This document shows, in pieces, positions 31,401 to 53,769 of a stretch of DNA of 64,000 bases; within the stretch, counting starts at the first letter, position 1, and every line of letters starts with the position of its first letter. The stretch spans positions 116,436,001 to 116,500,000 of the forward strand of contig NC_058368.1 in the NCBI RefSeq assembly GCF_018350175.1. Direction: 5' to 3'. The DNA comes from Felis catus. Lineage: Eukaryota. The position numbers and the translations under genes were made by a program. A model generated the notes under the pieces. It did no database searches and had not been told where the DNA came from. It saw only the letters and a program-made list of their open reading frames with translations.

Positions 31401-33831
31401 GCACAGAGCCCATGCAGGGCACTGGCAATGGCCTTGGCAGGGACGTCACAGCGAAACACATGGCACTTGAGCATACAACTGTCTTTGTCACCAGCCACAA
31501 AAGCGAAGTCCCTGGCAGGGGCAGAGATGGGGCTGGGGCAGGGGCAGTGACCAGGGTAGGGTAGAGGCTGGGTAGGCACAGGGGCCTGTAGTGCCAGCAG
31601 CAGACTGGAAAGTCAGGCAAGGGATATGGTGGGGAGGGAACAGGGAGATCAGGGTTGGGGCTCAAAGCACCAGGTTGTCGCTTACCTGTCACTGTTCCGG
31701 AAGCATGTGGGAGCACAGGAGAGAATCAGCCCAGTCTCTCAGGCTCTCCCCTATCCGTCCCTGCTGAGCTGGGCCCACCCTCCCCAACCAGGGCTGGACC
31801 AGGCAGGGGAGGCAGAGCTTGGGTCCATGTCAGAGGATCTGTGTCCAGGGGTTCAAGTACAGAGGATCAGCATCAGTGGGGATCACAGCCTGCAGGAGGG
31901 AGGGAGGAGCAACTCTCACTTGGGGGGATGTAGGGGTCCTCACCGGCCCTTGGAGCTGCCCACACCCCACACACGGATGTGCACCAGAGGCTGGCAGTGT
32001 ATCAGACTATGGTCCAGAGGATTCACCAGGCTCATGGCATCCTTCTTCAGGATCATCAGCATGTTCTGGCCCTGCCAAAGAAAGGTCAGTCTGGAGCTCA
32101 GATGAAGGTGGTTGCCATGGAGAACAGGCAATTTGGCGACAACTACCTCTGCTGGGCCCTGGGCTGAATCCCTTGAAGGGCCAGCCAGCTCACCTCACCC
32201 CAGGCACCATCTGGGGGCTGGCTGCGGCTACGGCTGTGAGTCTGGGCCAGTTGCTGGATGCAGTTATTGACTGCAATACTGCTCTTCCCTGGTACCAGAT
32301 CCTCTTCGGGTACTTCTACCCAACCCAGGGAGCGGACTGCAAAGCACTGATGGGTTGGGGGAAAGGACAGGAAGATCCTGAGTGAGTAGAGGCAGACGTG
32401 GAAGTGGAATAGAAGGTGGAATAGGATGGGAGGTATCACAGGTTCCACACATGTAAACCTTCTGGTACCTGCTCCCTTCACCTTTGATCACCTCTTCTCA
32501 GCCCAATACCACTCCTGACCTTTCCCTGGAAACAATCCGCCACCGCCACCACCATTCCCTGGGCTGGCTCTCAGGCCCAAGACACTACCTTAGCTCCTGG
32601 CTCCATGCTCTGGATGTAGGATTCCTCACCGTACCAGGACAAAGAGTTCCTGGAACAGAACAGAGCTCATAAGGGGACCACACCTCCTACAGAAGGGACA
32701 GTGGTGAGGCTCCAACTACTTGATGGGCATGAGATGTGGGATAACACCCAGAACACAGTGTGCAGAACACAGTGTGTTTTATACTTGAGGTATAAAACCA
32801 GAGTGGGAGAGGGCCCAGTACATATTAATTAAATGTAACATAGAGTGTGGCTTAAAATCTGAGCAAAAATTCAGGATACTGGACATAGAACAAAAGTTAC
32901 AAATAAGGAACAGGATACAAAATGTGGACCAGAACCCCAAACTGAGACAAGAGACTCTAGAACACAGGTCAGGAACCCTCCCCCTTCCGGAAAGGGCCAA
33001 GATGTAGAACATGATTTGTCAGTACCCAGAATAGGGAAAAACATGTAGCAAAATACAGAGCACAGAACTAGGGACAAAATTCAAACTATTGAGACTCAAG
33101 AAATGGGAAAGAGCCAAGAACCTGGGCTTGAATGCAGAATGTGGGTCCAGTTGCAACTCTGAGTGCCATGAAACCCCAAGCCTTTCATTCTGCCTGGCCT
33201 ATCCCTGTTACCTCCGGTCCAGTGAGCTCTCCAGGCTGGAGAAGGATCTCCCCTTGGGGGGCCGAAGTCCCCAAATCCCTTCCGTCCTCTGTAGAGAGGG
33301 GGCTAGGTCGGTATAGCAGCAGGCTTAAATCCGCACATGGGTTCAGACCCCCTCCAACACACTCCACCTACCGTGCCTAGGTCCTCTGCATCTCCTGTCT
33401 CCCAGGTTGGGCGCTGCCACTGGGTGCTGCCACTGGGTACGTGCCAATAGTAAGTACCTGCAGCATCGCGTATCTTCCTCCAGCCAGGGGGCAGGCCTGG
33501 CTCTCCCTCAAGACTCTGGTCCCCCCACAAGTCATCTACAAGACACCAAACGGGGAGAGGAAACACGGGACTGGAAAGGCACATTAGTGGATTCAGAATA
33601 ACACGGTCAGAACCCTCCTTCCATCTCAAAGGTGGCAATCCTTAGGCTGGAGGTACAGGAGGTCCTTTGCAGCACAAAAATCCAGGATTCATTTGTCCCG
33701 TGGTCCTCACCCCGAAACATACCCCGTCAACTCCCTCGTTACCCCTCAGCTCCCGATCCTCCCATCGGGACCCCGTGCACACCATCACAGTTGACCAGAA
33801 TGATGGCCAGCATGTAATCCTTGCCCAGCAT
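28430..33831 (-). CDS. APBB3: Amyloid-beta precursor protein-binding family B member 3 (FE65L2): WW domain plus two PTB domains, about 487 aa
   Basis: Exons 33831-33783 ([16 protein letters not shown]), 33535-33372 (WW: [29 protein letters not shown]), 33288-33212, 32649-32589, 32346-32194, 32071-31944, microexon 31691-31686, 31511(alt 31532)-31397, 31256-31175, 30932-30849, 30581-30466, 30332-30141. The last exon starts in gap 28504-28683 and ends [23 protein letters not shown] at 28430. Confidence 0.97.
31686..31691 (-). CDS. APBB3: 6-nt microexon in APBB3 PTB1 (adds two residues, GR-DR-DF)
   Basis: Minus strand CATGCTTCCGGAACAG|TGACAG|GTAAGC; frame-preserving between phase-2 exons. Confidence 0.85.
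33289..33371 (-). ncRNA. Mirtron-like 83-nt APBB3 intron, likely orthologous to human MIR6831
   Basis: Intron GTAGGTGGAGTGTGTTGG...CCTAGCCCCCTCTCTACAG; 5' GUAG pairs with CUAC leaving an AG overhang. Similar to the recalled human mir-6831 hairpin. Confidence 0.35.
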
Positions 33832-36315: not shown

Positions 36316-36742
36316 CTCTGGATCCCATGGGGGAGGAAGGATGAGCATCTTGGGCCTGCAGGTAGAGGCCTTTCAACCACAGACACCATATCTGGCTTCC
36401 CCAGCTATCACCCTTTTGCTATCTTCAACTTTTCCACAGTCTTCATCCTTGCTCTCCTTCTTGCAAAAGGTGAACAGTGGCTTATCAGCCAATAATCTGG
36501 ACGCCCCTCCTTAACCCCATGGGACTGGCCCCAAGACTGTGGCTTTTAGGGCCACCGGCCCCTTCCTATTCCAGCCCTGAGTGTGGAGTTTGCAGCTGAC
36601 TCTGATTTTCAGTATTCTCTCTAGCAATGTACCACGGCTCTTCCCTCCTGCGAGCCGGCTCCATACTGATTTTTCCCAAACTTGTTATAATTCCCGCTGT
36701 CCCCTGGCTAGCTACACAGGCCACCCAGGGTCTGGTTTGGGC

Positions 36743-37717
36743 ATGAGTGTAGAGGACGGGGGTATGCCAGGCCTGGGCCGTCCCAGGCAGGCCCGCTGGA
36801 CCCTGATGCTACTCCTGTCCACTGCCATGTATGGTGCCCATGCCCCATTACTGGCACTGTGCCATGTGAACGGCAGAGTGCCCTTCCGGCCCTCCTCAGC
36901 TGTGCTGCTGACTGAGCTGACCAAGCTACTGTTGTGCGCCTTCTCCCTCTTGGTGGGCTGGCAAGCATGGCCCCAAGGGGCTCCTCCATGGCGCCAGGCT
37001 GCCCCCTTTGCGCTATCAGCCCTTCTCTATGGCGCTAACAACAACCTGGTGATCTATCTTCAACGTTACATGGACCCCAGCACCTATCAGGTGCTGAGCA
37101 ATCTCAAGATTGGAAGCACGGCCCTGTTCTACTGCCTCTGTCTCCGGCACCGCCTCTCTGCACGCCAGGGCTTGGCACTGCTGCTGCTGATGGCAGCAGG
37201 GGCCTGCTATGCAGCTGGTGGCCTCCAAGACCCTGGAAGCACCCTTCCTGGGCCCCCTCCAGCAGCTGCTGCTGGCCGCATGTCCCTGCATATCACTCCA
37301 CTGGGACTGCTGCTTCTCATCTTGTACTGCCTCATCTCGGGCCTGTCGTCCGTGTACACAGAGCTGCTCATGAAGCGACAGCGGCTGCCCCTAGCACTTC
37401 AGAACCTCTTCCTCTACACTTTTGGTGTGCTCCTGAACCTAGGTCTACACGCAGGTGGTGGCCCTGGCCCAGGCCTCCTGGAGGGTTTCTCTGGTTGGGC
37501 AGCGCTTGTGGTACTGAGCCAGGCACTAAATGGACTGCTCATGTCAGCTGTCATGAAGCATGGCAGCAGCATCACACGGCTCTTTGTTGTGTCCTGCTCC
37601 CTGGTGGTCAATGCCGTGCTCTCAGCAGCCTTGCTGCGGCTGCAGCTCACAGCTGCCTTCTTCCTGGCCACACTGCTCATTGGCCTGGCTGTGCGCCTGT
37701 ACTATGGCAGCCGCTAG
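36743..37717 (+). CDS. SLC35A4: Solute carrier family 35 member A4, nucleotide-sugar transporter family, 324 aa, single coding exon
   Basis: MSVEDGGMPGLGRPRQARWTLMLLLST...YMDPSTYQVLSNLKIGSTALFY...LAVRLYYGSR*; multi-transmembrane hydrophobic pattern with the SLC35A YQVLSNLKI motif. Confidence 0.97.
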   Translation: MSVEDGGMPGLGRPRQARWTLMLLLSTAMYGAHAPLLALCHVNGRVPFRPSSAVLLTELTKLLLCAFSLLVGWQAWPQGAPPWRQAAPFALSALLYGANNNLVIYLQRYMDPSTYQVLSNLKIGSTALFYCLCLRHRLSARQGLALLLLMAAGACYAAGGLQDPGSTLPGPPPAAAAGRMSLHITPLGLLLLILYCLISGLSSVYTELLMKRQRLPLALQNLFLYTFGVLLNLGLHAGGGPGPGLLEGFSGWAALVVLSQALNGLLMSAVMKHGSSITRLFVVSCSLVVNAVLSAALLRLQLTAAFFLATLLIGLAVRLYYGSR

Positions 37718-38648: not shown

Positions 38649-38654
38649 AATAAA
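38649..38654 (+). terminator. SLC35A4 polyadenylation signal AATAAA
   Basis: AATAAA about 930 nt after the stop, followed by G/T-rich sequence. Confidence 0.75.
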
Positions 38655-39612: not shown

Positions 39613-42600
39613 CTAGCCTATACCCTGCTGAAGCTGCTGGTTCTGGGCTTGAAGCTCCTGGTTCTGTGTGGCCAGTTGGAGCGTGTCTTGCAGGATACCA
39701 GCCAGCAGGCTGCGGTGGTGATGCTCTGTGGTCATGGTCTGCTCCTCCCACAGCTCTCGCCAGGCTCGAAATACCTGTGCCCAGATTCAGAGATGCTTGT
39801 CAGTCAGCCTTGGAACCATTTCAAGGCCTGCCTTCTGTCCCCACTGACCTGCAGTGTATGGCATGTCCGAGCCCGGGCAGCCTGCACGTGCACGTCATAG
39901 AGGGCCATGAGGTCCTGCTCTGCAGTGTCCCGCTCTGCCTGAAGGGCCTCCAGCTGGAGTCTCCATAGTGTCTGCTCCCGCTGCCATCTCTGCCTCTCGA
40001 AGGCCTTCAGTGATAATACATATTCTTTGTTCAGTGCCACCTGTGTGCCAGACTTTGTTCCTAAACACTTCATGTGTATTCATTCATTTTAGCCAATGAA
40101 ACCCAGGGGAGGAAAGTAGTTGCCATTTTAGTTTTCCAAATCTGGTAGTTAGATTTGGAAACTGTGAATCAGAGAAGTGACCTAACCTGCCCAAATTTGC
40201 ATGGCTAGTGAGGGACAGAACTGAGATGACACATGCCCTTCAATGGTTCACTATCATTCTTAGGGTAAAGTCCAAATTCAGAGGCATGGCACACACTGGT
40301 CTCTTTAGCCTCACCTCTGACCATGTACCTGCTGGGGCCCCCCAGATGGACAATTTGCAGTACCCAGACTGTACTTTGCCATTGCTTCCCTCTGGACCTT
40401 TGCTCATAAACCATAGTCCTCAGAACGTATCCTCCCATCCCCTCATGCTCACAAGTTTTGTTTCCTAATTTGGGCAAACAAGTATATTTATTTAGTGCCT
40501 CTATGTGATGCATATGAACTTCCCACATGGAGTTCAGTCTAGTGAATTCCTCTGGCTGATTTGTTTTTCAAGTCTCAGCCTAGATGCCATCTTTGCTCCT
40601 CTCCTGCCTGAGTCAGGCACTCTTCTTTGTCCCCACAAGCCCCTAGCTCCCTGCATCACTGCGCTTAGCCCTGAAAATTGCTACATCTGTCCCCCATAAA
40701 GCTATAAGGACCATGAGAGAGGGTATGGCCCAGCCTGTTGTGACTGAGGCTGGATTCCAGCCCCCAACACAATGCCTGAACCAATTAGAAGAAGCCTCAA
40801 GTCCCCTACTTGACCCTCCTCACCTCCTTTCCAGCCACCAGGCCTTTGACTTGGTCACCTTCCACCTCTTCCTCCTCCTGTTCCAAATGCTTCAGTTCCT
40901 CTTGGATCCGTATCTGGTGCTGTTCTTGAAGTCTCTTCCTCTGTGCCTGGGCCAAGAAGAACTGCAGGGCCACATCTGGGGCGTGCCAGGCCTACATGGC
41001 ATTAGTCTAGGCTCAGCCAGAAGTCTGTGTGTGCCACAGCTTCGGGATACGGTGCCCAACTTTCCAACAGAACCCCACCACCAGGGCTGTTCCTACAACT
41101 ACGTCTGGGACCCAACTGTCCTGTAAGAGCCTGTAGCCTGGACAGAGACTTGGGGCCATGGGAGAAAGGTATTGGCTCTGCCAATAGGTGCCATGGAGGC
41201 CTTAAGGATCCTATACTCCTAATGTGACCCAGTAGGAAAACAGCCTTCCCATGCCCCTCTCTTAGGAATCATAGCCTGTCAGGTCCTCTCTTTGTCAGAA
41301 GCTCCATATTTGTCCCTGATGTTGGGGCACAGAAGTGGTAGACATGTTAGCTGTGCTCTGCAACTCTTCAGGCCCTCAAGAGCTTCCAGCTGTTCTGGGG
41401 TACATGAGGTATTACCTGTTCCTCAGAGTCCCTAGGAGGATGCTTTTGGTGGAGCCCAGGTCCTAGAGATGCTGTTACTCCTACTACTGGAGGAAAATGC
41501 AATTAAGCCCAACAAAGGTGGAGGGCACCCAGCTCCACCCCAAGCTCCAAACCCACCTTTCGGCTCTCCCTGGAAGCCTGGGCTGTGGCTTGCTGTTGAA
41601 TCTATCACCTGCTGAGAATATATTAAGAATGGGAATTCCATCCCCTTCCTCCTAGGATAGCACGTGTTAAGCTCAGGACTTTGAAATCAGACAGATCAGA
41701 GTCTCAGGCCCTCCTTTCCTCAGCTGTATAACCTCAGGCAGGTGTCTAATCTTTTGAATCCATTTCCTCACCTGTAAAATGGAACTAATAAAAGTTATAG
41801 AGGTGCCTGGGTGGCTCAGTTGGTTGAGCATCCACCTTCATTTCAGGTCATGATCTCACGGTTTGTGAGTTCAAACCTTGCATCGGCTATCAGCACAGAG
41901 CCTGCTTCAGATCCTCTTTCCCCCTCTTTCTCTGTCCCTCCCCTGCTCTCTCTCTCTCTCTTTCTCAAAACAAATAAAATAAACAAAAAAAAAAAAAACA
42001 TTTTTAAAAAGTTGTAGAGAGGGGCACCTGGGTGGCTCAGTCGGTTAAGCGGCCGACTTTGGCTCAGGTCATGATCTCACGGTCCATGAGTTCGAGCCCC
42101 GCGTCGGGCTCTGTGCTGACAGCTCAGAGCCTGGAGCCTGTTTCAAATTCTGTGTCTCCCTCTCTCTGACCCTCCCCCGTTGATGCTCTGTCTCTCTCTG
42201 ACTCAAAAATAAATAAACGTTAAAAAAAAAAAAAGTTGTAGAGGGGCACCTGGGTGGCTCAGTCAGTTAAGCGTCTGACTTTGGCTCAGGTCATGATCTC
42301 ATGGTTCTTGGGTTCGAGCCCTGCGTTGTGTTCTGTGCTGACAGCTCAGAGCTTGGAGCCTGCTTCAGAATCTGTGTCTCCCTCTCTTTCTGCCCCTTCC
42401 CTCCCCTTCTCAAAAATAAATAAAACCTTTTTTAAAAAAAGTTGTAGAGAGCATGAAATAAGACACCCAAAGCGCTAAGCAGTAGCAGATGCTGCTCAAT
42501 AAATGGGAACTTACATGCCTAAGTCCCGAAGCTCAGGGCTGTAAAAACAAGTTGTAAGTACGAAAAGGGTAGGACCAGGAGAAGGTGGACAGAAGCAGCA

Positions 42601-45600
42601 TTCCAGCCACCCTTTGGCAAATACTGGAAGACAGCACCCCCTTCTGCACAGGAGAGGCCATGCATTCTAAACGGATGCAAAAGCACCATACTGAACCTAA
42701 GGACTTGGGTGTTTGTACCTCTGCTGCCTTTGATTATCTCAGTGACCCTGAGACACTCAGATCCCTTCTCTGAGCCTCAGTTTGCTGACCTGAAAAATGT
42801 GAGCAATACTGTTTTCCCTGCTTAAAGTAATTTTATGGCTTCCCCTTGACCTTCAAGACAAAGTCCAAACATCTCAATAAATTTACAAAGCCCTTTATGA
42901 CCGGGCCCCTACTTATCTCTTCAATCATTCTCTCTTGACTCTTCCTCAAAATATCCTACAGCAAAATGATCTGCTTGCAGTCCCCCAAAGAGATCAAGCC
43001 CCTGCTTACTTCCGAGACTTGACCTGTTAGTTTCTGTGCCTGGAATGTTTGTTCTTCACTCATCTTTGCTGGCTACCTCCTTCAGAAATCAACATCCCCT
43101 GTGAAGTGTTTAGATGCCCCACTGAACCCTGTGTTGATAAAGCCTTCAAAGCACTGATCATGGTGTTATAATTGCTTCTCTCCAGAAGATTGCAAATTCC
43201 ATGAGGACAGGGGTTTCCCAGGGCCTACGTGGCACTATGCCTGACACACTGAGAAGTCACTAAAATGTTTGGAAATCAATAAATTAGTGAACAAAGAAAG
43301 GGACTCCTCATAGTGCTCTGTAGATAGGAGAGAAGGCAGACATCAATGGGGCTCCTAAGAGGTTGAGCCAGAAAACATACCTGTAGTTCTGGGAGTCCCA
43401 CAGCCTCAGCTTTGACCCCTTTGAGCATCTGGCTTCCTGGGCACTGGCTGCAGGCTTTTACCACCTATGGAGAGAGGGTTTAAGGTAGGCTCCAACAGCT
43501 ACTCTCTTCAGCACCTCCAGGCCTCACCTTGCTTACCCGCAACTCTCGCAGTGCCCTGCCCAGCTGGCTGAGCCCACTTTCTGTGAGGGTGTCTCCAAGG
43601 AGGCCTGAACGCAGGCTCTTCAGGTTTGCCCGGCGGGCACGTGCCTCTTCTACTGCATCCCACTGGGTGGGCCTCACCTGTTTCACCTGCATCCTCCTTC
43701 CCGAGGCCCCCAACAGAGCAGCTCTGAGTAAGCTCAGGGAGCCACCTAATAAGGGGAGACTCGGAGTGAATCACTCCTTCTGGACTCCAGAGCACACTGC
43801 CTGTAATACTTGTAATTTTTATTAATACTACTTACAAAAAATAGCTAACACCTATCAGGCTTTTACATGGGCTTGGCACTATGCTAAGAGTTTTTGTGGA
43901 TCACCTCTTTTTATCCACACAACACTCCAATGAAGCAGCAACTCTAATTTTGTCTGCCTACCCCCACATTTTCCAGATGAACCAAATGAAGCTTAGAGAG
44001 GTCAAGCAACTCCCTGGTGAGTGGCAGAGCTAAAACTTAAGCCCAATTCTGTCTGACATTAAAGCCTGTGCCTTTAATCAGGATACCAAACTGGCCTATG
44101 GATAAACATACTTTTGTCCTTCACTGCTTTATCCTTAAGGGCATGAACTGGCCTAATTTTTCTTCCTTACTCCACAGGGCCTGGCACAGTGTGTGGTCTG
44201 GGACTATGTTAGCCAAATTAATGTGTGCTTACTAATTTTGGATACGGAGAGCCAGACTTTTTCTTTCTTTTCACTTTTATTGTAGAAAATTTCAAACATG
44301 TACAAAGTATAGGAAATTCAATCTACTTATCACCCAGCTTCAATAATTGTCAACTCACAGCCATTCTTGTTTGATCTATACCCTCTACTTGACCTCCCCT
44401 AAGTCTCTGACATCATATCATTTCAGAGGGGCCTGATTTTTAATGAGTGTATGAAAATAGGCAAGTTCTCTCCCTTCTCTGATCCTCCCTTTCCTCATTT
44501 ATAAATTAGGCCTCCCTCCCTAAGTTAGATGTGTCTCATGGGGTTGTGGTAAGAATAAAATGTATTAGTGTGAAAATTCTTGGTTAACTGTTGAAAGCCT
44601 CTGAAGGGCGAGGGGTTGCTTTTACTATCAGCCCTGCCTTTCCAGACTTTGGCAACCTAGCCATACTGGGACCTTTCTGAGTCTTGACCCTCCCAGAGGT
44701 GAGGCTGTCTCTGGACTGGGGTTGGGGCTGCAGCTGTTTTGGTGAGAGGGCGGTCAGGCATAAGTTAGATGTCAGAGCTTCCCAAAGAACCCCAGACCCT
44801 TCCCCAGGCCACCTTGAGGGTCCAGGCGAAGAAGAAGACCAGTGTAGTTGTTTCCTTCCAGGAGCCATGACACGATCCAGGGCAGAGAGCCCTCTACCTC
44901 CTCACCAATAACCTTACCAGCCAACACCTGCAGCAGGGGGCAATCTCTGCCAGAAGGAGAGAGGAAGAAAGGAGGGGTCCACTGGTGGATGGGGAAAGAA
45001 ACTGACCCAAATTACATCTGATGGAAAGGCTATTTCCAGAACTTTGGTGCACCACCAGGCAGATTTGCAACCTTGCATAGACCCTTTTTTAAATTTTATT
45101 ATTTAATTACACAAATAATATATTCTCATAGCGCAAAATTTAATTTGTCTATCTGATAAGGGACTTGTATCCAGAACATACATTTATGTATGTATGTATG
45201 CTATTTTTATTTGTTTATTTTTATTTTTGAGAGAGAGAGAGAGAGGGCATGAGATTGAGGGGCAGAGAGAGGGAGAGAGAGAGAGAATCCCATGCAGGCT
45301 CTGCACTGTGCAGAGCCTGAAGCAGGGCTCGAGCTCACCTGGTAAGGGACTCAAACTCATGAACTGTGAGAACCAACTGAGCCACCCGGGCACCCCTATC
45401 CAGGATATTTAAAGAGCTCTTACACCTCAGTGATAGAAGACTAATCACCCTATTTATTTTTTATTTATTTATTTTTTAAGTAGGCAACACAGCCAATGTG
45501 GGGCTTGAACTCACGATCCTGAGATCAAAAGTCATATGCCCTGGGGTACCAGGGTGGCTCAGTTGGTTAAGCATCCGACTTCAGCTCAAGTCATGATCTC

Positions 45601-47941
45601 ACGGTTTGTGAGTTTGAGCCCCGTGTCAGGGTTTGTGCTGACAGCTCAGAGCCTGGAGCCTGCTTCAGATTCTGTGTCTCCCTCTCCTCCTCCTGCTCTG
45701 TCTCTCAAAAATAAATAAATGTTAAAAAAATTTTTTTCTTTAAGAGTCACATGCCCTGCCAACTGAGCCAGCCAGGTGCCCCTAATCACCCAATTTAAAA
45801 TGGCAAAGCAAAGTGACATCCACAAAAATGGCAGAGTATGGAACTCTGGGGATCTGTCCTTTTTCAGCAACATGTGGAAAAAATGGTCAGGATCAACCTT
45901 ACAGCAACTCTGGGGGACAGTGAAAGGTTTACTACAACCAAGTGAATGCTTACCCAGGAGAAAGCAACTTAAATATGTTGAGATCTTTGTGGTGTGTTAA
46001 CTTAACCTAGCCCCAACCTCCTCCCCAGCACAGAGGTTGTCTTGAAGACAACAGCCCATGTTTCTGGTGGTGGGGTGCTTGGCTCTGGAGGGAGCAGAGT
46101 AGATTTTGTTCCCAAGGAACTGTGTTTGTTGTTTTGACTGTCTAGGGTTTCCCCAGAGGAATGACAAAAAGGGCTTCCTTTTGTTTCCCTTACCTTGGAA
46201 CTCTCTCAGGGCAGAGCAGCTATCCTAGATGATAGTCCCTCAAAACACTGAAAAGATGAAAGAACAAGCAAAAATAACAGTTGGGGCAAACAACAGATGC
46301 ATGGAAAGACTGGGAAGAAAAGTTGGGGAGTCAGATTGGGGGGGGGGGGGAGATAAGGAAAATTCCCCCATGCACCAAGGAATCTAGAAAGCCACACACA
46401 TGCCCAGAGCAGGATCCAGGCTGAGAAAAGACCTGAGAAGATGGCAAGTTTTCATCTCTGTTTTTTTAAGCTTATTGTAAGCAGGAAGTAAGACTAAGGC
46501 AGAGATGTAAGTGGAATGGTGAAGCATAGAAGGACTGACCCAACACAGAGCCAATCTATGGAAAGCTGGAGATTTTAAAAATTTTTTTTTCTTTCTCTTT
46601 TTATTCCTTTAATAAAAAATGTTTTTGTCCCAGTAGAGTAAGGAATTCTATGTCAGGTCACTAGCTAACCACTGAGATGACAGAATGGAGACTTCAGTGG
46701 CAACAAAGAATCCAGCCTTTGCAAAAATTGTTTGGAAAGTAACTAAGCAAACAGATAGTTGCAGCCCACAGCAAGCAACAATGCAAACCCTAGAGGGGAT
46801 GGGGAATCTCTTTTTCAGAGTTCCCCCATTATCATATCCAAAATGTCAGAGCCTAAGGAAAAGAAATGGAGACGTAAGAGACCAACATAATGAAGAATAT
46901 AATCTTTACAAAAATAAAAATTCTCAAATTGGGCAGTTTCCAACCAAAAAAATATCTGGCATGCAAATAAAGATGCATGGCCCACCCACAGGGGAAAAAA
47001 AAATTAATAGAAACTGTCCTTGAGGAAGCACAGACATTGGATTCACTAAAGACTTTAATCCAACTATCTTAAATATGCTCAGAAAAGTAAAGGAAATCAA
47101 GAAAATGATGTCTCAATGAATAGAAAATACGAATAGAAGCACAGAAATTATAAAAAGGAACCAAAAAGAGGGGTGTCTGGCTGGCTTAGTAAGTGGAGCA
47201 TGCGACTCTTGATCTTGGGGTTGTGAGTTTGTGCCCCACACTNNNNNNNNNNNNNNNNNNNNNNNNNNNNNNNNNNNNNNNNNNNNNNNNNNNNNNNNNN
47301 NNNNNNNNNNNNNNNNNNNNNNNNNNNNNNNNNNNNNNNNNNNNNNNNNNNNNNNNNNNNNNNNNNNNNNNNNNNNNNNNNNNNNNNNNNNNNNNNNNNN
47401 NAAATTCCCTAGAGAGCAGATTTGAGTGGGCACAAGAAAGAATCTCAGCAAAGTTGAAAATAGGTCAAAAAAATTATGCAAAAAGAAAAAAGAATGAAGG
47501 AAAATGAGCCCAAGGGGCCAGTGAATGCATGAAGTGTATAAATACATGCAGAATGGGACTGTCAGAGGGAGAAGAGAGGGAAAAAGGGGCAGAAGGAATA
47601 TTTGAAGAAATAGTGCTCAAAAATTCCCCAAATTTATGAAAGACATGAATCTATACATCCAAGAAGCTCAACAAATTTCAAGAAGGATAAACTCAAAGAG
47701 ATTCATGCCAAGACACATTATAATCAAACCACCAAAAGCCAAAGAGAGAATCTTGAAAACAGAATAAGAGAAGCAACTTGTGATGGTACGAGTGATCCTC
47801 CATAAGAATGAAAACCAGTTTCTCATCAGGAATTGTGGAAGCCATTAGTGCCTGGCTGACTCAGTCAGTACAGCATGTAACTCTTGATCTCCAGGTTGTG
47901 AGTTCCAGCCCCATGTTGTATGTAGAGATTACTTAAAAATA

Positions 47942-47978
<37 letters not shown>

Positions 47979-50900
47979 AGAAAGAAATTATGGAGACCAG
48001 AATGCAGTGAGATGACATATTTAAAGTGCTGAAAGGGGTGTCTGGGTGGCTCAGTCGGCTGAGCCACTCTTGCTTTCAGCTCAGGTCATGATTGCAGGGT
48101 CGTGGGATGGAGCCCCACATCAGTGTGGAGGCTGCTTGGGATTCTCCTTCCCTCTCTCCCCCACTCCATCTCTCTCTCTGTAACTCTGCCCCTCTCCCCT
48201 GCCTGCTCTCTTTCTCTCTCTAAAAATAATGCTGGGAAAATAAAGTGTGTCAACTAAGAATTCCATATCTGGCAAAACTATCCTTCAAGAACGTGTGAGA
48301 AATTAAGGTATTCCCAGATTAGTAAAAGCTGAGGGAGTTCATTGCTGGTAGACCTGCCTTATAAGAAATGCTAAAGGATGGGGCACCTGGGTGGCTCAGC
48401 TGGTTGAGCGTCCGACTTCAGCCAAGGTCATGATCTCATGGTCTGTGAGTTTGAGCCCCACGTCGGGCTCCGTGCTGACAGCACAGGCCTGGAGCCTGCT
48501 TCAGATTCTGTGTCTCCCTATCTCTCTCTGCCCCTCCCCAGCTCATGCTCTGTCTCTCTCTCTCTGTCAAAAATAAACATTAAAAAAAATTAAAAAAAAA
48601 AAAAAAAAGAAATGTTCAAGGAGGGAGTCCTTCACCATGTCAGAGGTGAGGAAATGAGACTCTGAGGCTGCCCTGGGTCTCTGCATCCATACTTCAGCCA
48701 CACCCCCACCCTGTTCCCTAAAGCAGTCAGAAGATTCCATCAGACTTACAGGTCTCTGGGGAGCTGCAGGATCCTCAAGGCCCCTCGCCACATACCCCGG
48801 GTCCCAGGCCCCTCAGGAGGGTCAGGCCCTGGGCAGGACATGGTGACAGTGAGCAGAGAGCAGGCCCTGTGGAGGACAGGGTAGGATGAGATCAAATGCC
48901 TAAGGGATAGGGGTTGGGGGTGACAGGTGCCCTCCTGTCCTCACCTGCCTTCATCCCCTGCAGCTTGTAAGTACAGCTCTGAGGCAGTTCTTGAGTCGGA
49001 CACCTCCACCTCACTGGCATTTTCTACCACCCTGGAGGATGGGGAGACAAGCTCAACTCCTAAGCACCTCCTAAGAGGTTCTGGGGTTCTGTCCAGCCCC
49101 CCAGAACCTCTGCATGGGGAGTCCTTTGGGGTCCCAAGAGCCTGTAAGAACCATCCCCAAGGTTCCAAGCTCAGTATATCCCTTGAAAGCCTATCATCTT
49201 CATCATCTTTCTTCTCCTGTCATCTACCCAGTTCTGCTCAACGAGATGCTCACATCACCCAGATGGTAATGACTGAGTGGAAGAGGTGTAGATGGATAGG
49301 GTAAGAAGAGTGAGAGGGCTGGGGATACGAGCTGCAGGGAAGATGATGAGTGGGTGTGATGAGCACAACCCCAAGTGCAGAGCTTCCCTTCTGCATGGCA
49401 GTGGGGAGAAACCTCCCACGGCTAGGTTTGGGGGTTTCAGCCCTGCCTTAAGACAAGCACCCTCAGATCCCGTTGGCCCCTGGAGACTCACAAGCCCAAA
49501 GGGGACACGTCTAACACCGATAGGTTCTCTCTCCCTGGAGAGAGCAGGTCCTGAGTCTTTCCACTGGGGCTGAGCTGCAATCACACAAGCACAACACCAG
49601 TTACAAACAGCCTTTCCCAGACCTCGTCTCACCAGATCCTCCCGCTGGGGCTCCTTGAGTCAACGAGGGCACCAACATTCAGCCATTTCAGGCAGGAAAT
49701 AGGAGACCTCAGAGAGGCAAGCCCACACTGGTCAGTGGCAGATGAGGCTAGACTCAGTCTCTTCTGGCTGCCTGCGAGCCTCAGGCCCTTTCCACAGCAC
49801 CACCATTGGTTCCCAGGGCTCCCCTCCATGCAGGGTCTCACCTGCACCAGGCTAAGGGTGCTAACCCCAGGAACAGCGCCCCTGTGGGGCAGAGTTTCCT
49901 CAAACAGCATCTGCAACAGCTAAAGTGGAGAAAGGGGTTCAGTACGGATGGAGAAAGGATAAATCTGTCCTTCAACAGTTTCGTGACGGTGAAGTCTATG
50001 CCCGGTTCTATGCTACGTGCTGCGGACACAGGGACACAGTGTCCAAGACAGAAACAGCCCCAGCCCTCACGGTTCACAGCGAGCCAGTCAAATGAGTAGA
50101 CATTTTCAATGAGACCTGCTGTTTCCTAAAACAGGGGCCTGCCTATGATGAAGTTCTGAGGCAGCTATTTTGACTTGGGGGCATTTTGAAGAAGCCCTGA
50201 AAACAAAACTTTCAAGTTTATTATCGGTATTATGAAAAACTGTGAATATTAGACCTTGCTGGATATTTCATGTTTGCACACCACCCCATCTTGACCCTCA
50301 CCCTATGGGCCCAGTCCGCTAGGGAGGGGAAGGGAAGTTTCTCAAAGGTCTCCTGGAGGAAACAACACCTGAGCCTCATGAGACCTATGCTTGGTAGCTC
50401 CCCCAGGACTCACCTGAGGTACAAGCCGAGGTGTCTCTGTTTCCCGACCCCGAAGCAGTAGGGACACACTGTACCCTCGGGCCACCAAGCCTAATGTGGA
50501 CTGGACTCGTGCTAGCAGCTCCTGCTCAGCCTCCTGCAGGGGACACAGACATATCCCCCGGTCACAGGTGCCCTGACCCAGCCTGCCTGAGCAATGGGCT
50601 TGGGAAACCCTTAGCACTCCAGGATCCAGACGCCTGAGGATTCCCATCCTCCTCCCGTTTCCCTACAACACCCCCTACCTGAGCAGCATCAGAGCCCAGG
50701 ACTCTGTCAAAGGTGATGCATTGTTCCTGCAGGGGAAGACTGGGCTCAGCATTGTCACTCCCATCTTCCAGGGCCTCACCCGCACCCCGTCCCATTTCTA
50801 CCTGAGTGTCTAGAGTCTCCGGCTGAAGCAGGCAGATGCTCTGGGGCCCCTCCAGAAGCAGTGTGGGGCAACATGTGTCCTCAGGGCCTGAGAAGGATGG

Positions 50901-51251
50901 ACTGTATATTAACTCCCGTGCCTAAGTCCTGCCCTCAACTTTGGCCTCAGTTTCCTAACCTAGAGTACTGAGCACAGGATCAGACCCCCTGAGAGGCGGA
51001 GCGTCCTCAAAAAGCATCTGCAGCAGCTAAGGCTGTAAAATGGCCTTGGCTTCCCCTCTCCCAGGAGGCTCCCCCAGGCTGCGTTACTTCCAAGAGTGAA
51101 TGTGTAAGGCCTTCTTCTCACCTGATTCTCTTCCACTCTCAACTTCTACCACCACAGTCAGCCTGGCCTGGGGGTTGTCCATGAGGGCTGGGGGCACTGA
51201 GCTGCCCTGGCCCAAACCAGCCTCTGCGCTTGCTACCTCTCCACACTCCAT
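39613..51251 (-). CDS. Uncharacterised 16-exon gene: degenerate kinesin-motor-like domain plus coiled-coil tail, 595 aa (probable orthologue of mouse E230025N22Rik)
   Basis: Exons (minus): 51251-51122, 50887-50802, 50726-50679, 50533-50414, 49919-49842, 49574-49492, 49031-48945, 48866-48750, 44946-44813, 43745-43537, 43464-43381, 41611-41557, 41486-41416, 40991-40824, 40004-39849, 39774-39613. Total 1788 nt, all GT-AG, phases concordant, no internal stop. GCCATGG Kozak start with an in-frame TGA 12 codons upstream. Kinesin-like segments occur in the correct order: ITFDRVLGSDAAQ, GYSVSLLLRG, QDLLSPGRENLSV, LVVENASEVEV, RACSLLTVTM, GALRILQL, LLEGNNYTGLLLRLDP. Confidence 0.85.
41800..42440 (+). 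mobile_element. Three tandem CAN-SINEs inserted at one target site within a MIR
   Basis: Heads at about 41800, 42021 and 42243, separated and flanked by aaagtt(g/a)tagag. Confidence 0.92.
45200..45785. mobile_element. Cluster of nested CAN-SINEs
   Basis: Minus-strand SINE 45200-45396; plus-strand SINE 45543-45740 inserted into a second minus-strand SINE (about 45450-45782). Confidence 0.8.
45790..48625 (+). mobile_element. Degraded L1 5' UTR/ORF1 region interrupted by several CAN-SINEs (about 47170, 47847, 48035, 48380-48606)
   Basis: ORF1-like catccaagaagctcaacaaatttcaagaaggataaactcaaagagattcatgccaagacacattataatcaaac and aagaattccatatctggcaaaactatccttcaaga. Confidence 0.8.
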
Positions 51252-51739
51252 GGCTTCTATGCCTCTCAGATTCCCCTCAATAATTCATCTCCCTGATCTG
51301 CAGGCTCTGGGTAGGGCCTCTAAATAACAACTTATCAAAGGAGGTGATAGTCCCCTCTTTTCTGAGTGAATCAGAATGTTGCATGGGATTCTTCTTCTTT
51401 TTTTTTCCCCTCTTTTGAAAAGGGTCAAACACATATACCTGCAGAGAGAAAGTATGATGAGCCTCCAAGCACCCAGCTTCGGCAATTACCAACTTATGAC
51501 CAGTCTTATTTCTTCCTTTCCCCTTCCCATCCCCTGTGGATTCTTTTGAAGCAAATCCTAGACACCGTCCATTTCATCTATAGCTTTTCCAGCATATATT
51601 TATAAGATAACTACCTTTTTTTAAATGACAGCTTTGTTAAGATATAGTTCATATACCATACAATTCACCCATTTAAAGTGTTTATTTCAAACATACCTTA
51701 GTATGTTTGCAGATAATGTGTAACTATCACCACACCCCA

Positions 51740-52070
51740 TTTTAATGTTTATTTATTTCTGAGAGAGGGAGACAGAGTGGGAGCAGGGGAGGGACAGAGA
51801 GAGAGGGAGACACAAAATCTGAAGGAGGTTCCAGGCTCTGAGCTGTCAGCACAGAGCCCGACATGGGGCTCAAACTCACCAACTGTGAAATCATGACCTG
51901 AGCCAAAATCGGATTCGTGGGTTTGAGTTCCGCAGTGGGCTGCCCACAGTGAGGAGCCTGCTTGGGATCCTCTCTCTCCCTCTCTCTTTGTCCCCCCACC
52001 CCCACTCGCACATGCACTCATGCTTTCTCTCTCTCTCTCAAAATAAACATTAAAAAAATAAAATCTTAAA
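51740..52070. mobile_element. Two CAN-SINE bodies joined head-to-head
   Basis: Minus-strand body 51740-51910 joined directly to a plus-strand body at about 51915-52065, both lacking 5' heads. Confidence 0.75.
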
Positions 52071-52224
52071 AAATGTTCAAATAAAAAAATGGAATCACAC
52101 AGTGTGTGTTCTTTTAGTGACTGACTTCTTTCACTTAGCGTAATGTTTTCAAGGTTCATCCATGTTGTAGCATGCATCGGTACTAACCTTCCTATGACTG
52201 AATGATGTTCCACACAGAGATGAA

Positions 52225-53170
52225 ATGACTTCTGTCAGCAAATATGCAGAGTTTGCCCAAACTTCACAACTAAGAGCACAATTTCTATAAGATTGCCTTT
52301 ACTACAGACACTAGTCATAAGCTTGGGGTCCCCAGTCCTTCTTCCCTCTGACCAGTTAGCTACATTTTCAGGTGTTCCCACTCTTCCTGCAGGTTCCATT
52401 CTTTGCTGGAATGACTTATAGAACTAAGGAAGGCATTATCCTTATTGTATCTGCAACAAATTTTCTGACACCAGCTGGGGTCCTATATTTCAATCCAATT
52501 TTGACACTAACTACCTGGAATTAGCAGCAGCTCCCACAAGTTAAAATGCAAGGTCCTCATCAAGAACCGTAAGATCATGCCCTGAGCTGAAATCAAGCAT
52601 TGGACACTTAACTGACTGAGCCACCTAGGTGCCCCAGATTTGGGGTTCTGATGACTGACCACCCTTCAGGCTCACTAGAATGCTCACAGAACTCAAGAAA
52701 GTGCTCTACTTATGATTACCTTTTTATTATAAAAGATACACATGAACAATCAGATGAAGAGGTACATAGGGCAAGGTCTGGAAGAGTTCTGAGCAAAGGA
52801 GCTCCTGTCCCTGTGGAGTCAGGGTGTGCCACCCTCCCAGCACATCAGTGTGTTCACCAACCAGGAAGCTCCCTGAGCCTCACTGTTCAGAGGGTTTGTT
52901 TTGTTTTGTTTTGTTTTGTTTAGGTTTGGGTTTTTAAATTGAGATTTCATTGTGTAGGCATGTTTGATTAAATCATAGGCTATATGACTGAACTCAACTC
53001 CAGCCAATTACATGGTTGAATTTTCTGGTGTGCAGCTTCCTCCATCCTGAAGCTATCTAGGAATCCAGCCAGAAGTCACCTCATTAGCATGACAGAGAGA
53101 TTCTTATCCTTCAAAAAATTCCAAAGGTTTTTGGAGCTCTGCTCCTGCAACTGGAGACAAAGACCCGCTA
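52225..53170. mobile_element. MER21-like LTR fragments
   Basis: ttttctgacaccagctggggtcctatatttcaatccaattttgacactaactacctgga and agatgaagaggtacatagggcaaggtctggaag motifs. Confidence 0.7.
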
Positions 53171-53178
53171 TACTCCTG

Positions 53179-53390
53179 AGGTGCCTGGGTGGCTCAGCTG
53201 GTTAAGGTCCATCTTCAGCTCAGGTCATGATCTCATGGTTTCTGAGTTTGAGCCCCATAGTGGGCTCTGTGCTGACAGTGCAGAGGCTGGAGCCTTTGAG
53301 TTCTGTATCTTCCTCTCTTTCTGCCCCTCCCCTGCTCACGCTCTGTCTCTCTCTCTCAAAAATGAATAAACATTAAAAAAAAAAAAAAGG
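53179..53390 (+). mobile_element. CAN-SINE
   Basis: Head ggtgcctgggtggctcag, CT tract, A tail. Confidence 0.88.
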
Positions 53391-53550
53391 ACTGGAAAAA
53401 AAAAAAAAGACTGGATATATTCTTTATTATATGACCAGCCACTCGATGGTTTTTCACCAAGGATCCCTTCTAGCAAAGGATCACACCTGTTTGATTATTT
53501 ACATTTAGTATAGCATTTACGGAACAGATAGAACAATAAAAACATGAATA

Positions 53551-53769
53551 CAGTAGTCTCCCCATCCTTATTTATGGAGCATATATTCCAAGACCCCCAG
53601 TAGATGCCTGAAACCATAAATAGTTCTGAACCCTATGTATAGTGTTTTTTCCTACACGTAAATATAGTGAAGTTTAATGTATAAATTCGGCACAGTAAGA
53701 GATTAACGACTACTAATAACAAAATAGAACAGTTATAACAATATGCTGTAATAAAAATCATGTGGATGT
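53551..53769 (+). mobile_element. MER44/Tigger-type DNA transposon terminal fragment
   Basis: cagtagtctccccatccttat...ttccaagacccccagtagatgcctgaaacc. Confidence 0.75.

Follow-up and report, generated by a model that had tools for sequence, protein, structure and literature searches.

The domestic cat genome carries a gene for a pseudo-kinesin within the 64,000-nucleotide stretch of Felis catus contig NC_058368.1 analysed here (positions 116,436,001 to 116,500,000 of the forward strand, RefSeq assembly GCF_018350175.1; hereafter the window, whose own numbering is used throughout). The gene is RefSeq LOC102900045, lies on the minus strand and is the orthologue of mouse E230025N22Rik. We consider it highly probable that it is an intact, conserved gene for a catalytically dead kinesin-fold protein kept as a non-enzymatic module, for which we propose a role as a scaffold or regulator. 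The full cat gene has 16 exons with every splice site intact and an open frame of ~1.7 kb, encoding ~595 residues in which a motor-like domain leads into a two-helix neck, then a disordered linker and finally a coiled coil of ~150 residues. An initial annotation of the window had described 43537-51251 as encoding a hidden, catalytically dead kinesin motor; these limits proved to be the exon 10 donor and the exon 1 ATG, and an exact six-frame search placed each of the kinesin-like peptides quoted there on the minus strand, within 44817-50717 (Table 1). The protein is not hidden, however, since RefSeq lists LOC102900045 and two whale orthologues have been automatically named 'Kinesin motor domain-containing protein'.

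Homology to the kinesin motor domain

Exon 10 (69 residues), used as a query against 1.8 billion representative proteins, gave 26 matches led by a 561-residue fishing cat protein (P0001; 100% identity, E = 4e-32), the others being from lemur, deer mouse and a marsupial, two unnamed UniParc entries, and axolotl (P0024, E = 5.5e-5). The axolotl protein passes the Pfam Kinesin model PF00225 (E = 1.4e-16; 60.9 bits, cut-off 29.3) and, searched alone against PDB, matches KIF13B at 1.2e-11. It is collinear with cat isoform X1 (P0032, 545 residues) over ~570 columns that begin in the motor-like part and reach the C-terminus (BLASTP E = 1e-35). PF00225 is also present in a frog (Mantella) protein, and 11 of the 55 aligned family members reach it at E ≤ 0.1. 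A profile built from 21 members (A1) returned 103 PDB matches at E ≤ 1, all of them kinesin motor domains, with KIF1A best at 7.4e-14 and alignments covering profile positions ~10-358. A mammal-only profile gave a marginal result (10 matches, all kinesins, best 0.0064).

The cat sequence searched directly behaves differently. Exon pieces showed no kinesin match in Pfam, with none at E ≤ 10; exons 10 and 4 had no kinesin match among PDB sequences; and the whole cat protein P0032 matched no Pfam family at E ≤ 0.1, PF00225 included. The Pfam comparison suggested in the initial annotation thus came out divided, negative for the cat exons and P0032 and positive for axolotl P0024 and the 11 members mentioned above. 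Because the cat protein and its single exons match nothing, the homology rests on the orthologues, the profile and the predicted structure; for most mammalian members it is invisible to Pfam and emerges through amphibian orthologues or structure prediction. The silence of the single exons is also the point in favour of regarding the kinesin resemblance as a chance pattern drawn from three reading frames, but the profile, transitive sequence and structure evidence returns kinesins only (E values from 1e-11 to 1e-16, Z about 21). We rejected this explanation on the search statistics and give it next to no probability.

Structures were predicted for the grey seal orthologue (AlphaFold2; 591 residues, 21-sequence alignment) and for cat P0032 (AlphaFold; 55-sequence alignment). 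The predicted local distance difference test score (pLDDT) was 70-90 at residues 88-375 of the seal model; it averaged 75 over the cat model, with 75-94 in the core. Foldseek returned 354 PDB matches at E ≤ 0.001 for each model, with KIF13B at the top in both cases (3e-14 for seal, 7.8e-13 for cat). In VIA-align, the seal model matched KIF15 at Z 20.6 (root-mean-square deviation, rmsd, 2.8 Å; 229 residues aligned) and auto-inhibited KIF13B at Z 20.3 (278 aligned), and the cat model matched KIF15 at Z 20.9 (rmsd 3.0 Å, 234 aligned), with 342 chains at Z ≥ 8. The best 50 matches of each structural search were all kinesin motors or kinesin-containing assemblies. About 235-245 residues align out of ~330 in a motor, a share that fits deletions in the nucleotide and microtubule segments, and the kinesin motor fold, with its central sheet and helices alpha1-alpha6, is predicted to be kept. 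Together, these searches show homology between the first ~320 residues and the kinesin motor domain, as the initial annotation had claimed from peptide resemblance. The outcome named there as refuting the claim, profile or structure searches without any kinesin-fold match, did not occur.

Loss of the nucleotide and microtubule motifs

In the hidden Markov model (HMM) alignment to KIF1A, AYGQTG is paired with 'lrgret' of the family, and the KIF1A residues AGKSYTMMGKQEK have no counterpart there, so that the Gly-Lys-Ser/Thr end of the P-loop and alpha2a/L5 are deleted. The cat protein reads RGRETETPR at the P-loop position, where G-x4-G-K-[ST] finds no match, and in the cat model eight residues join beta3 (61-67) to alpha2 (76-87). 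In place of the switch I loop, about six residues lead from alpha3 (146-157) to beta6 (164-174), and a 24-residue connection with one 6-residue helix runs from beta7 (187-197) to alpha5 (222-231), replacing L11, the long alpha4 and L12. At the switch II position, LQLPRDL in cat and LQLPGAL in most mammals, DLAGSE has become LP(G/R)xx. The cat protein contains neither N-x-x-S-S-R (switch I) nor D-x-x-G-x-E (switch II), its L12 remnant is the acidic GEEVEG, and the PYRDS motif is absent. The losses listed in the initial annotation, namely deletion of the P-loop lysine with the following loop and of switch I, replacement of switch II and shortening of alpha4/L12, therefore hold motif by motif.

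No other exon supplies intact motifs, a possibility that the initial annotation had named as refuting its reading. On the minus strand, the interval 39.0-52.5 kb (159 gap letters unread) encodes no Walker A, DLAGSE-like or PYRDS-like peptide, whichever frame is read, and these motifs are absent from 49 of 49 placental orthologues. All 49 have lost switch I as well as the Lys-Ser/Thr with the ~11 residues after it, and carry other sequence in place of switch II. In axolotl, the P-loop position still reads G-x6-K-T and the switch II position D-x-x-G. Frog and turtle have a P-loop without Gly-Lys-Ser/Thr, and the switch II D-x-x-G is also gone. Decay of the site therefore began before or early in tetrapod history, with a further 11-residue deletion in mammals.

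From the sequence and the models, we infer that the protein would be unable to bind or hydrolyse ATP as kinesins do. Microtubule binding through the canonical alpha4-L12-alpha5 face also appears unlikely, because the cat core carries a net charge of -6 with only three lysines and because its L12 is acidic. Together with the acidic L12, the six-residue alpha4 helix and the missing PYRDS motif speak against microtubule binding and microtubule-stimulated ATPase activity. It is extremely unlikely, in our judgement, that the domain still binds or hydrolyses nucleotide, or walks on microtubules, through a non-canonical site: the G-x6-K-T and D-x-x-G of axolotl mean that the ancestral form may have bound nucleotide, but the motifs are deleted or replaced in every placental protein compared, no alternative exon carries them, and the acidic L12 remnant and the charge and lysine content of the cat core speak against it.

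Range of the family and probable selection on the protein

With the fishing cat protein as query, 192 relatives were found. The 120 of these that were listed come from felids, seals, ruminants, whales, bats, primates, rodents, armadillo and aardvark, and nearly all of those listed are named 'uncharacterized protein LOC...', two rodent entries being 'Riken cDNA E230025N22 gene'. The family extends over amphibians (axolotl and the frog Mantella), turtle, marsupials and more than 100 placentals, and one further sequence was taken for a monotreme member. Renewed searching with a profile of distant members returned only the three known non-mammalian proteins, which does not establish absence from birds, squamates and fish. 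The remark in the initial annotation that no characterised mammalian example was known to its author agrees with the literature searched, in which the gene is unnamed and unstudied. No paper describing the family was found, E230025N22Rik occurs only in gene lists (uterine epithelium, striatum and heart transcriptomes, with one table placing it on mouse chromosome 18), and no paper mentioning six RefSeq LOC identifiers of family members was found.

Conservation was taken per column as the mean majority-residue frequency in 49 placentals. It was 0.86 in the core, 0.88 in the neck and 0.84 in the C-terminal coiled coil, compared with 0.72 in the linker (core vs. linker, Mann-Whitney p = 8e-11), and some of the highest values fall in the remodelled segments (0.92 for the P-loop remnant, 0.91 for that of L12/alpha5). 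Pairwise identity follows the same order, with 0.77 in the core, 0.74 in the coiled coil and 0.52 in the linker. Because the core and the remodelled loops are far better conserved than the linker, we infer that selection keeps the domain as a non-enzymatic module; from these alignments, the gene looks selected and not decaying.

We regard it as highly unlikely that LOC102900045 is instead a decaying dead kinesin, either a unitary pseudogene or a transcribed locus with a frame open by chance. The loss of all catalytic motifs, the lack of a 5' CpG island, the fast evolution (~83% identity between the cat and seal proteins) and the ratio of nonsynonymous to synonymous substitution (dN/dS) above 1 reported in hares would suit such a locus, but the ~1.7-kb frame is open over 16 exons with intact splice sites in cat, the same architecture recurs in more than 100 mammals, marsupials, turtle and amphibians, and different parts of the protein are conserved to very different degrees, a pattern that neutral decay does not leave. 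The preserved frame and this unequal constraint led us to reject the pseudogene reading.

Several observations weigh against a conserved kinesin-fold module, besides the lack of a Pfam match for the cat protein and of any match for single exons. By mammalian standards the LOC102900045 protein changes rapidly, and in a study of hares this gene is listed with dN/dS above 1 (PMC6065068). Many orthologue models skip exon 8 (beta6-beta7) or exon 3, which would disrupt the fold of such isoforms. The 5' end is not secure: isoform X1 starts inside intron 2 and lacks the beta1 exons. The pLDDT of the seal model is below 50 at residues 1-87.

Some of these points favour a reading in which the motor-like half is no more than a harmless relic, function resides in the neck and C-terminal coiled coil alone, and the main transcripts start downstream or skip motor exons, implying no folded kinesin-like domain in most tissues. 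Isoform X1 does without exons 1-2, about 14 of 55 models lack exon 8 and some lack exon 3, the N-terminus of the Peromyscus model (P0009) is unrelated, and the 87 N-terminal residues of the seal protein are of low confidence. A mere relic fits poorly with a placental core conserved like the coiled coil (0.86 vs. 0.84 by column, 0.77 vs. 0.74 pairwise) and far above the linker, and with remodelled loops that are among the best conserved segments; the models with skipped exons may be prediction artefacts. We consider this reading quite unlikely and favour a selected, non-enzymatic kinesin-fold module.

Probable relationship to kinesin-3 and comparison with non-motile kinesins

The best sequence and Foldseek matches are the kinesin-3 motors KIF1A, KIF13B and KLP-6. 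In the HMM alignments, the residues that follow alpha6 are matched with the KIF1A and KIF13B neck linker and neck coil, and the longest structural alignments of the predicted model (284-297 residues) are to auto-inhibited KIF13B (6a20) and full-length KLP-6 (7wrg) and include the neck coil and CC1; residues 23-324 of the cat model correspond to 2-412 of KIF13B, with 284 residues aligned. Unlike kinesin-3 motors, the cat protein lacks the P-loop, switch I, switch II and the lysine-rich K-loop (its L12 being GEEVEG), has no FHA or other Pfam domain that we could find, and is ~595 residues long compared with more than 1000. The sequence and model comparisons suggest a kinesin-3 origin, which is likely but not firm because VIA Z values are tied across kinesin-3 and kinesin-5, -7 and -12 and because the K-loop and FHA domain are absent.

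Vik1 and Cik1 of budding yeast are non-catalytic partners of the kinesin-14 Kar3, in which a motor homology domain without a nucleotide site is combined with a coiled coil; Vik1 binds microtubules and pairs with Kar3. The initial annotation drew on these proteins in suggesting that the cat protein could partner a true kinesin in the manner of Vik1/Cik1 or act as a static microtubule adaptor. As a description of architecture the analogy seems apt, since the cat protein too is predicted to be a kinesin fold without a nucleotide site plus a coiled coil. The functional proposals would remain analogies, and the acidic L12 remnant speaks against canonical microtubule binding of the kind implied for a static adaptor. 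The motor homology domain of Vik1/Cik1 is C-terminal, whereas that of the cat protein is N-terminal with a kinesin-3-like neck, and Vik1 was neither among the best 50 matches of either structural search nor among the sequence matches. The opposite domain order suggests that the family arose independently of Vik1/Cik1, and this is probably the case.

Animals also have ATPase-poor members of the kinesin superfamily, KIF26A/KIF26B (kinesin-11) and KIF7/Costal2, that are thought to act without motility. Their motor domains are still recognised by family models and bind microtubules, whereas the cat protein fails PF00225 and has its binding loops deleted or replaced. Literature on 'pseudokinesin' led only to a fungal clade, the 'pseudoKinesin-21' orphan group, a pseudo-kinesin clade in a superfamily tree that is reported to be unique to fungi (Richard et al. 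2016, PMC5076506). The tetrapod family shares the pseudo-kinesin label with it, the two having been compared by description only.

Gene structure and neighbourhood

Exons were read from the minus strand with a listing of stop-free segments and their AG and GT sites (Table 1). The cat RefSeq protein P0032 maps to the window with zero mismatches in 14 GT-AG segments, from 50795 to 39613; this mapping was checked exon by exon, and full-length analyses used database proteins (cat P0032, seal P0037). The ten exons of the motor half have GT-AG borders throughout, and all phases are compatible. Exons 11-16 encode the variable disordered linker and then the long C-terminal coiled coil, the region in which the cat model has helices at 391-430 and 438-544.

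Table 1. Kinesin-like peptides and exons of LOC102900045, in window positions.
Feature	Position	Strand	Content
Peptide ITFDRVLGSDAAQ	50679-50717	-	exact search
Peptide GYSVSLLLRG	50447-50476	-	exact search
Peptide GRETET	50432-50449	-	exact search
Peptide LLQMLF	49902-49919	-	exact search
Peptide QDLLSPGRENLSV	49515-49553	-	exact search
Peptide VVENASEVEV	49001-49030	-	exact search
Peptide ACSLLTVTM	48839-48865	-	exact search
Peptide GALRILQL	48761-48784	-	exact search
Peptide QLPRDL	48749-48766	-	exact search
Peptide GSLPWIV...LRLDP	44817-44891	-	exact search
Exon 1	51122-51251	-	ATG 51251-51249; donor cag/gtgaga; poorly conserved N-terminus, beta1-like strand (..RLTVVVEVE..)
Exon 2	50802-50887	-	86 nt; phase 1 to 0; AG/GT borders
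Exon 3	50679-50726	-	48 nt; strand ITFDRVLGSDAAQ
Exon 4	50414-50533	-	helix alpha1, strand beta3 (GYSVSLLL), P-loop remnant RGRETETPR straight into alpha2
Exon 5	49842-49919	-	alpha2b (LLQMLFEE), start of beta4
Exon 6	49492-49574	-	beta4-beta5 region (QDLLSPGRENLSV), aligned to KIF1A/KIF13B VRDLLNP..L.V
Exon 7	48945-49031	-	strand VVENASEVEV, helix alpha3; ends where the switch I loop should start
Exon 8	48750-48866	-	117 nt; beta6 (ACSLLTVTM), beta7 (GALRILQL), switch II remnant LPRDL
Intron 8	44947-48749	-	3.8 kb; N gap 47243-47401 and carnivore SINE-like repeats
Exon 9	44813-44946	-	alpha4 remnant DCPLLQVLAG, acidic L12 remnant GEEVEG, alpha5 (SLPWIVSWLLEG), beta8 (GLLLRLDP)
Exon 10	43537-43745	-	alpha6, neck-linker-like stretch, two helices like the kinesin-3 neck coil and CC1
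Exon 11	43381-43464	-	
Exon 12	41557-41611	-	
Exon 13	41416-41483	-	
Exon 14	40824-40991	-	
Exon 15	39849-40004	-	
Exon 16	39613-39774	-	stop included

Two open exons (1-2) lie upstream of isoform X1, in phase with it, and reach the ATG at 51251. The first coding segment of isoform X1 itself extends upstream of exon 3 to an ATG at 50795, inside intron 2. No residue of the exon 1 protein differs from the fishing cat model P0001 or, over residues 1-34, from Neofelis P0029, and the RxRP adenine-contact motif of kinesins is missing from it. The exon 2 segment is matched in seal, buffalo, lemur and gerbil proteins, and exons 1-2 together encode the same residues as the fishing cat model and are consistent with the models for seal, buffalo, lemur, gerbil and guinea pig. 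The sequence and these orthologue models place exons 1-2 in the gene as its probable 5' end.

Exon 3 is skipped in frame in the P0001 and P0089 models and exon 8 in about 14 of 55 orthologue models. The lengths of both are multiples of three, and both are absent from many models (exon 3 from at least two); their absence may represent in-frame alternative splicing that removes the FDRV strand or beta6-beta7. Exon 9, with the remnants of alpha4 and L12, is aligned to KIF1A SVLTWLLRENLGGNS. A second, exon-5-like copy lies in intron 1 at 50961-51026 (minus strand), preceded by an AG and ~80% identical to exon 5 in DNA. Its peptide (LLQMLFEDAPPLRGSDPVLSTL) is nearer the consensus of other mammals than cat exon 5 is. 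The copy leads into a stop codon and may stem from an early duplication within the gene or be an alternative exon no longer in use.

The window holds ten N runs, one of which (47243-47401, 159 letters) falls inside 43537-51251. Exon 8 ends in phase 2, with two codon bases, and exon 9 gives the third, so that the frame closes across the gap; no extra residues were found at this junction in the cat RefSeq protein or in the 55 aligned orthologues. Because P0032 and the orthologues run through the exon 8/9 junction unbroken, no coding sequence is required from the gap. Open-frame translations typical of carnivore tRNA-derived short interspersed elements (SINEs; ..AQVMISRFV.LSP..G..LTAQSLEPASDSVSP..) occur at 45184-45718 and 48046-48593 (intron 8) and at 51742-52213, with several SINE-like copies within the introns and upstream of LOC102900045.

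The gene lacks a CpG island at its 5' end, the observed/expected CpG ratio being 0.04-0.36 throughout 50500-53750, a composition that would fit restricted expression. LOC102900045 and SLC35A4 are arranged tail to tail, as convergent genes with stop codons ~1.9 kb apart and poly(A)-like signals between them at 38649 (+) and 39184 (-). We take the single-exon frame at 36581-37717 (+) to be SLC35A4 and the segment at 33303-33638 (-) to be an APBB3-type WW-domain exon, both names having been given by peptide recognition.

Discussion

We propose that the protein would serve as a protein-binding or regulatory scaffold that oligomerises through the C-terminal coiled coil. A homodimer prediction for the seal coiled coil (residues 438-591) scored 0.49 against 0.62 for one control, which speaks neither for nor against such pairing. 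A partner would be bound by the remodelled surfaces that were once the nucleotide and microtubule faces; by conjecture, this could be a kinesin-3-type motor, engaged via the neck helices. By analogy with the yeast proteins, the family might more specifically be a kinesin-3-derived pseudo-kinesin that serves a genuine kinesin as non-catalytic partner or as brake, pairing through its neck coil, CC1 and coiled coil. We regard this as possible, though unlikely; if true, it would be an independently arisen vertebrate counterpart of Vik1/Cik1.

Mammals are generally credited with about 45 KIF genes, a list regarded as complete. The gene described here, for a probably non-enzymatic kinesin-fold protein, adds one that is missing from the standard mammalian KIF list, and one that has been kept through tetrapod history after removal of its nucleotide site, with the remodelled loops conserved. 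Pseudo-enzymes of such a kind often prove to be regulators, and the single kinesin example studied in depth, Vik1/Cik1, changed the understanding of Kar3 motility. The mouse orthologue, E230025N22Rik, makes the binding, the microtubule contact and the effect of a knockout directly testable.

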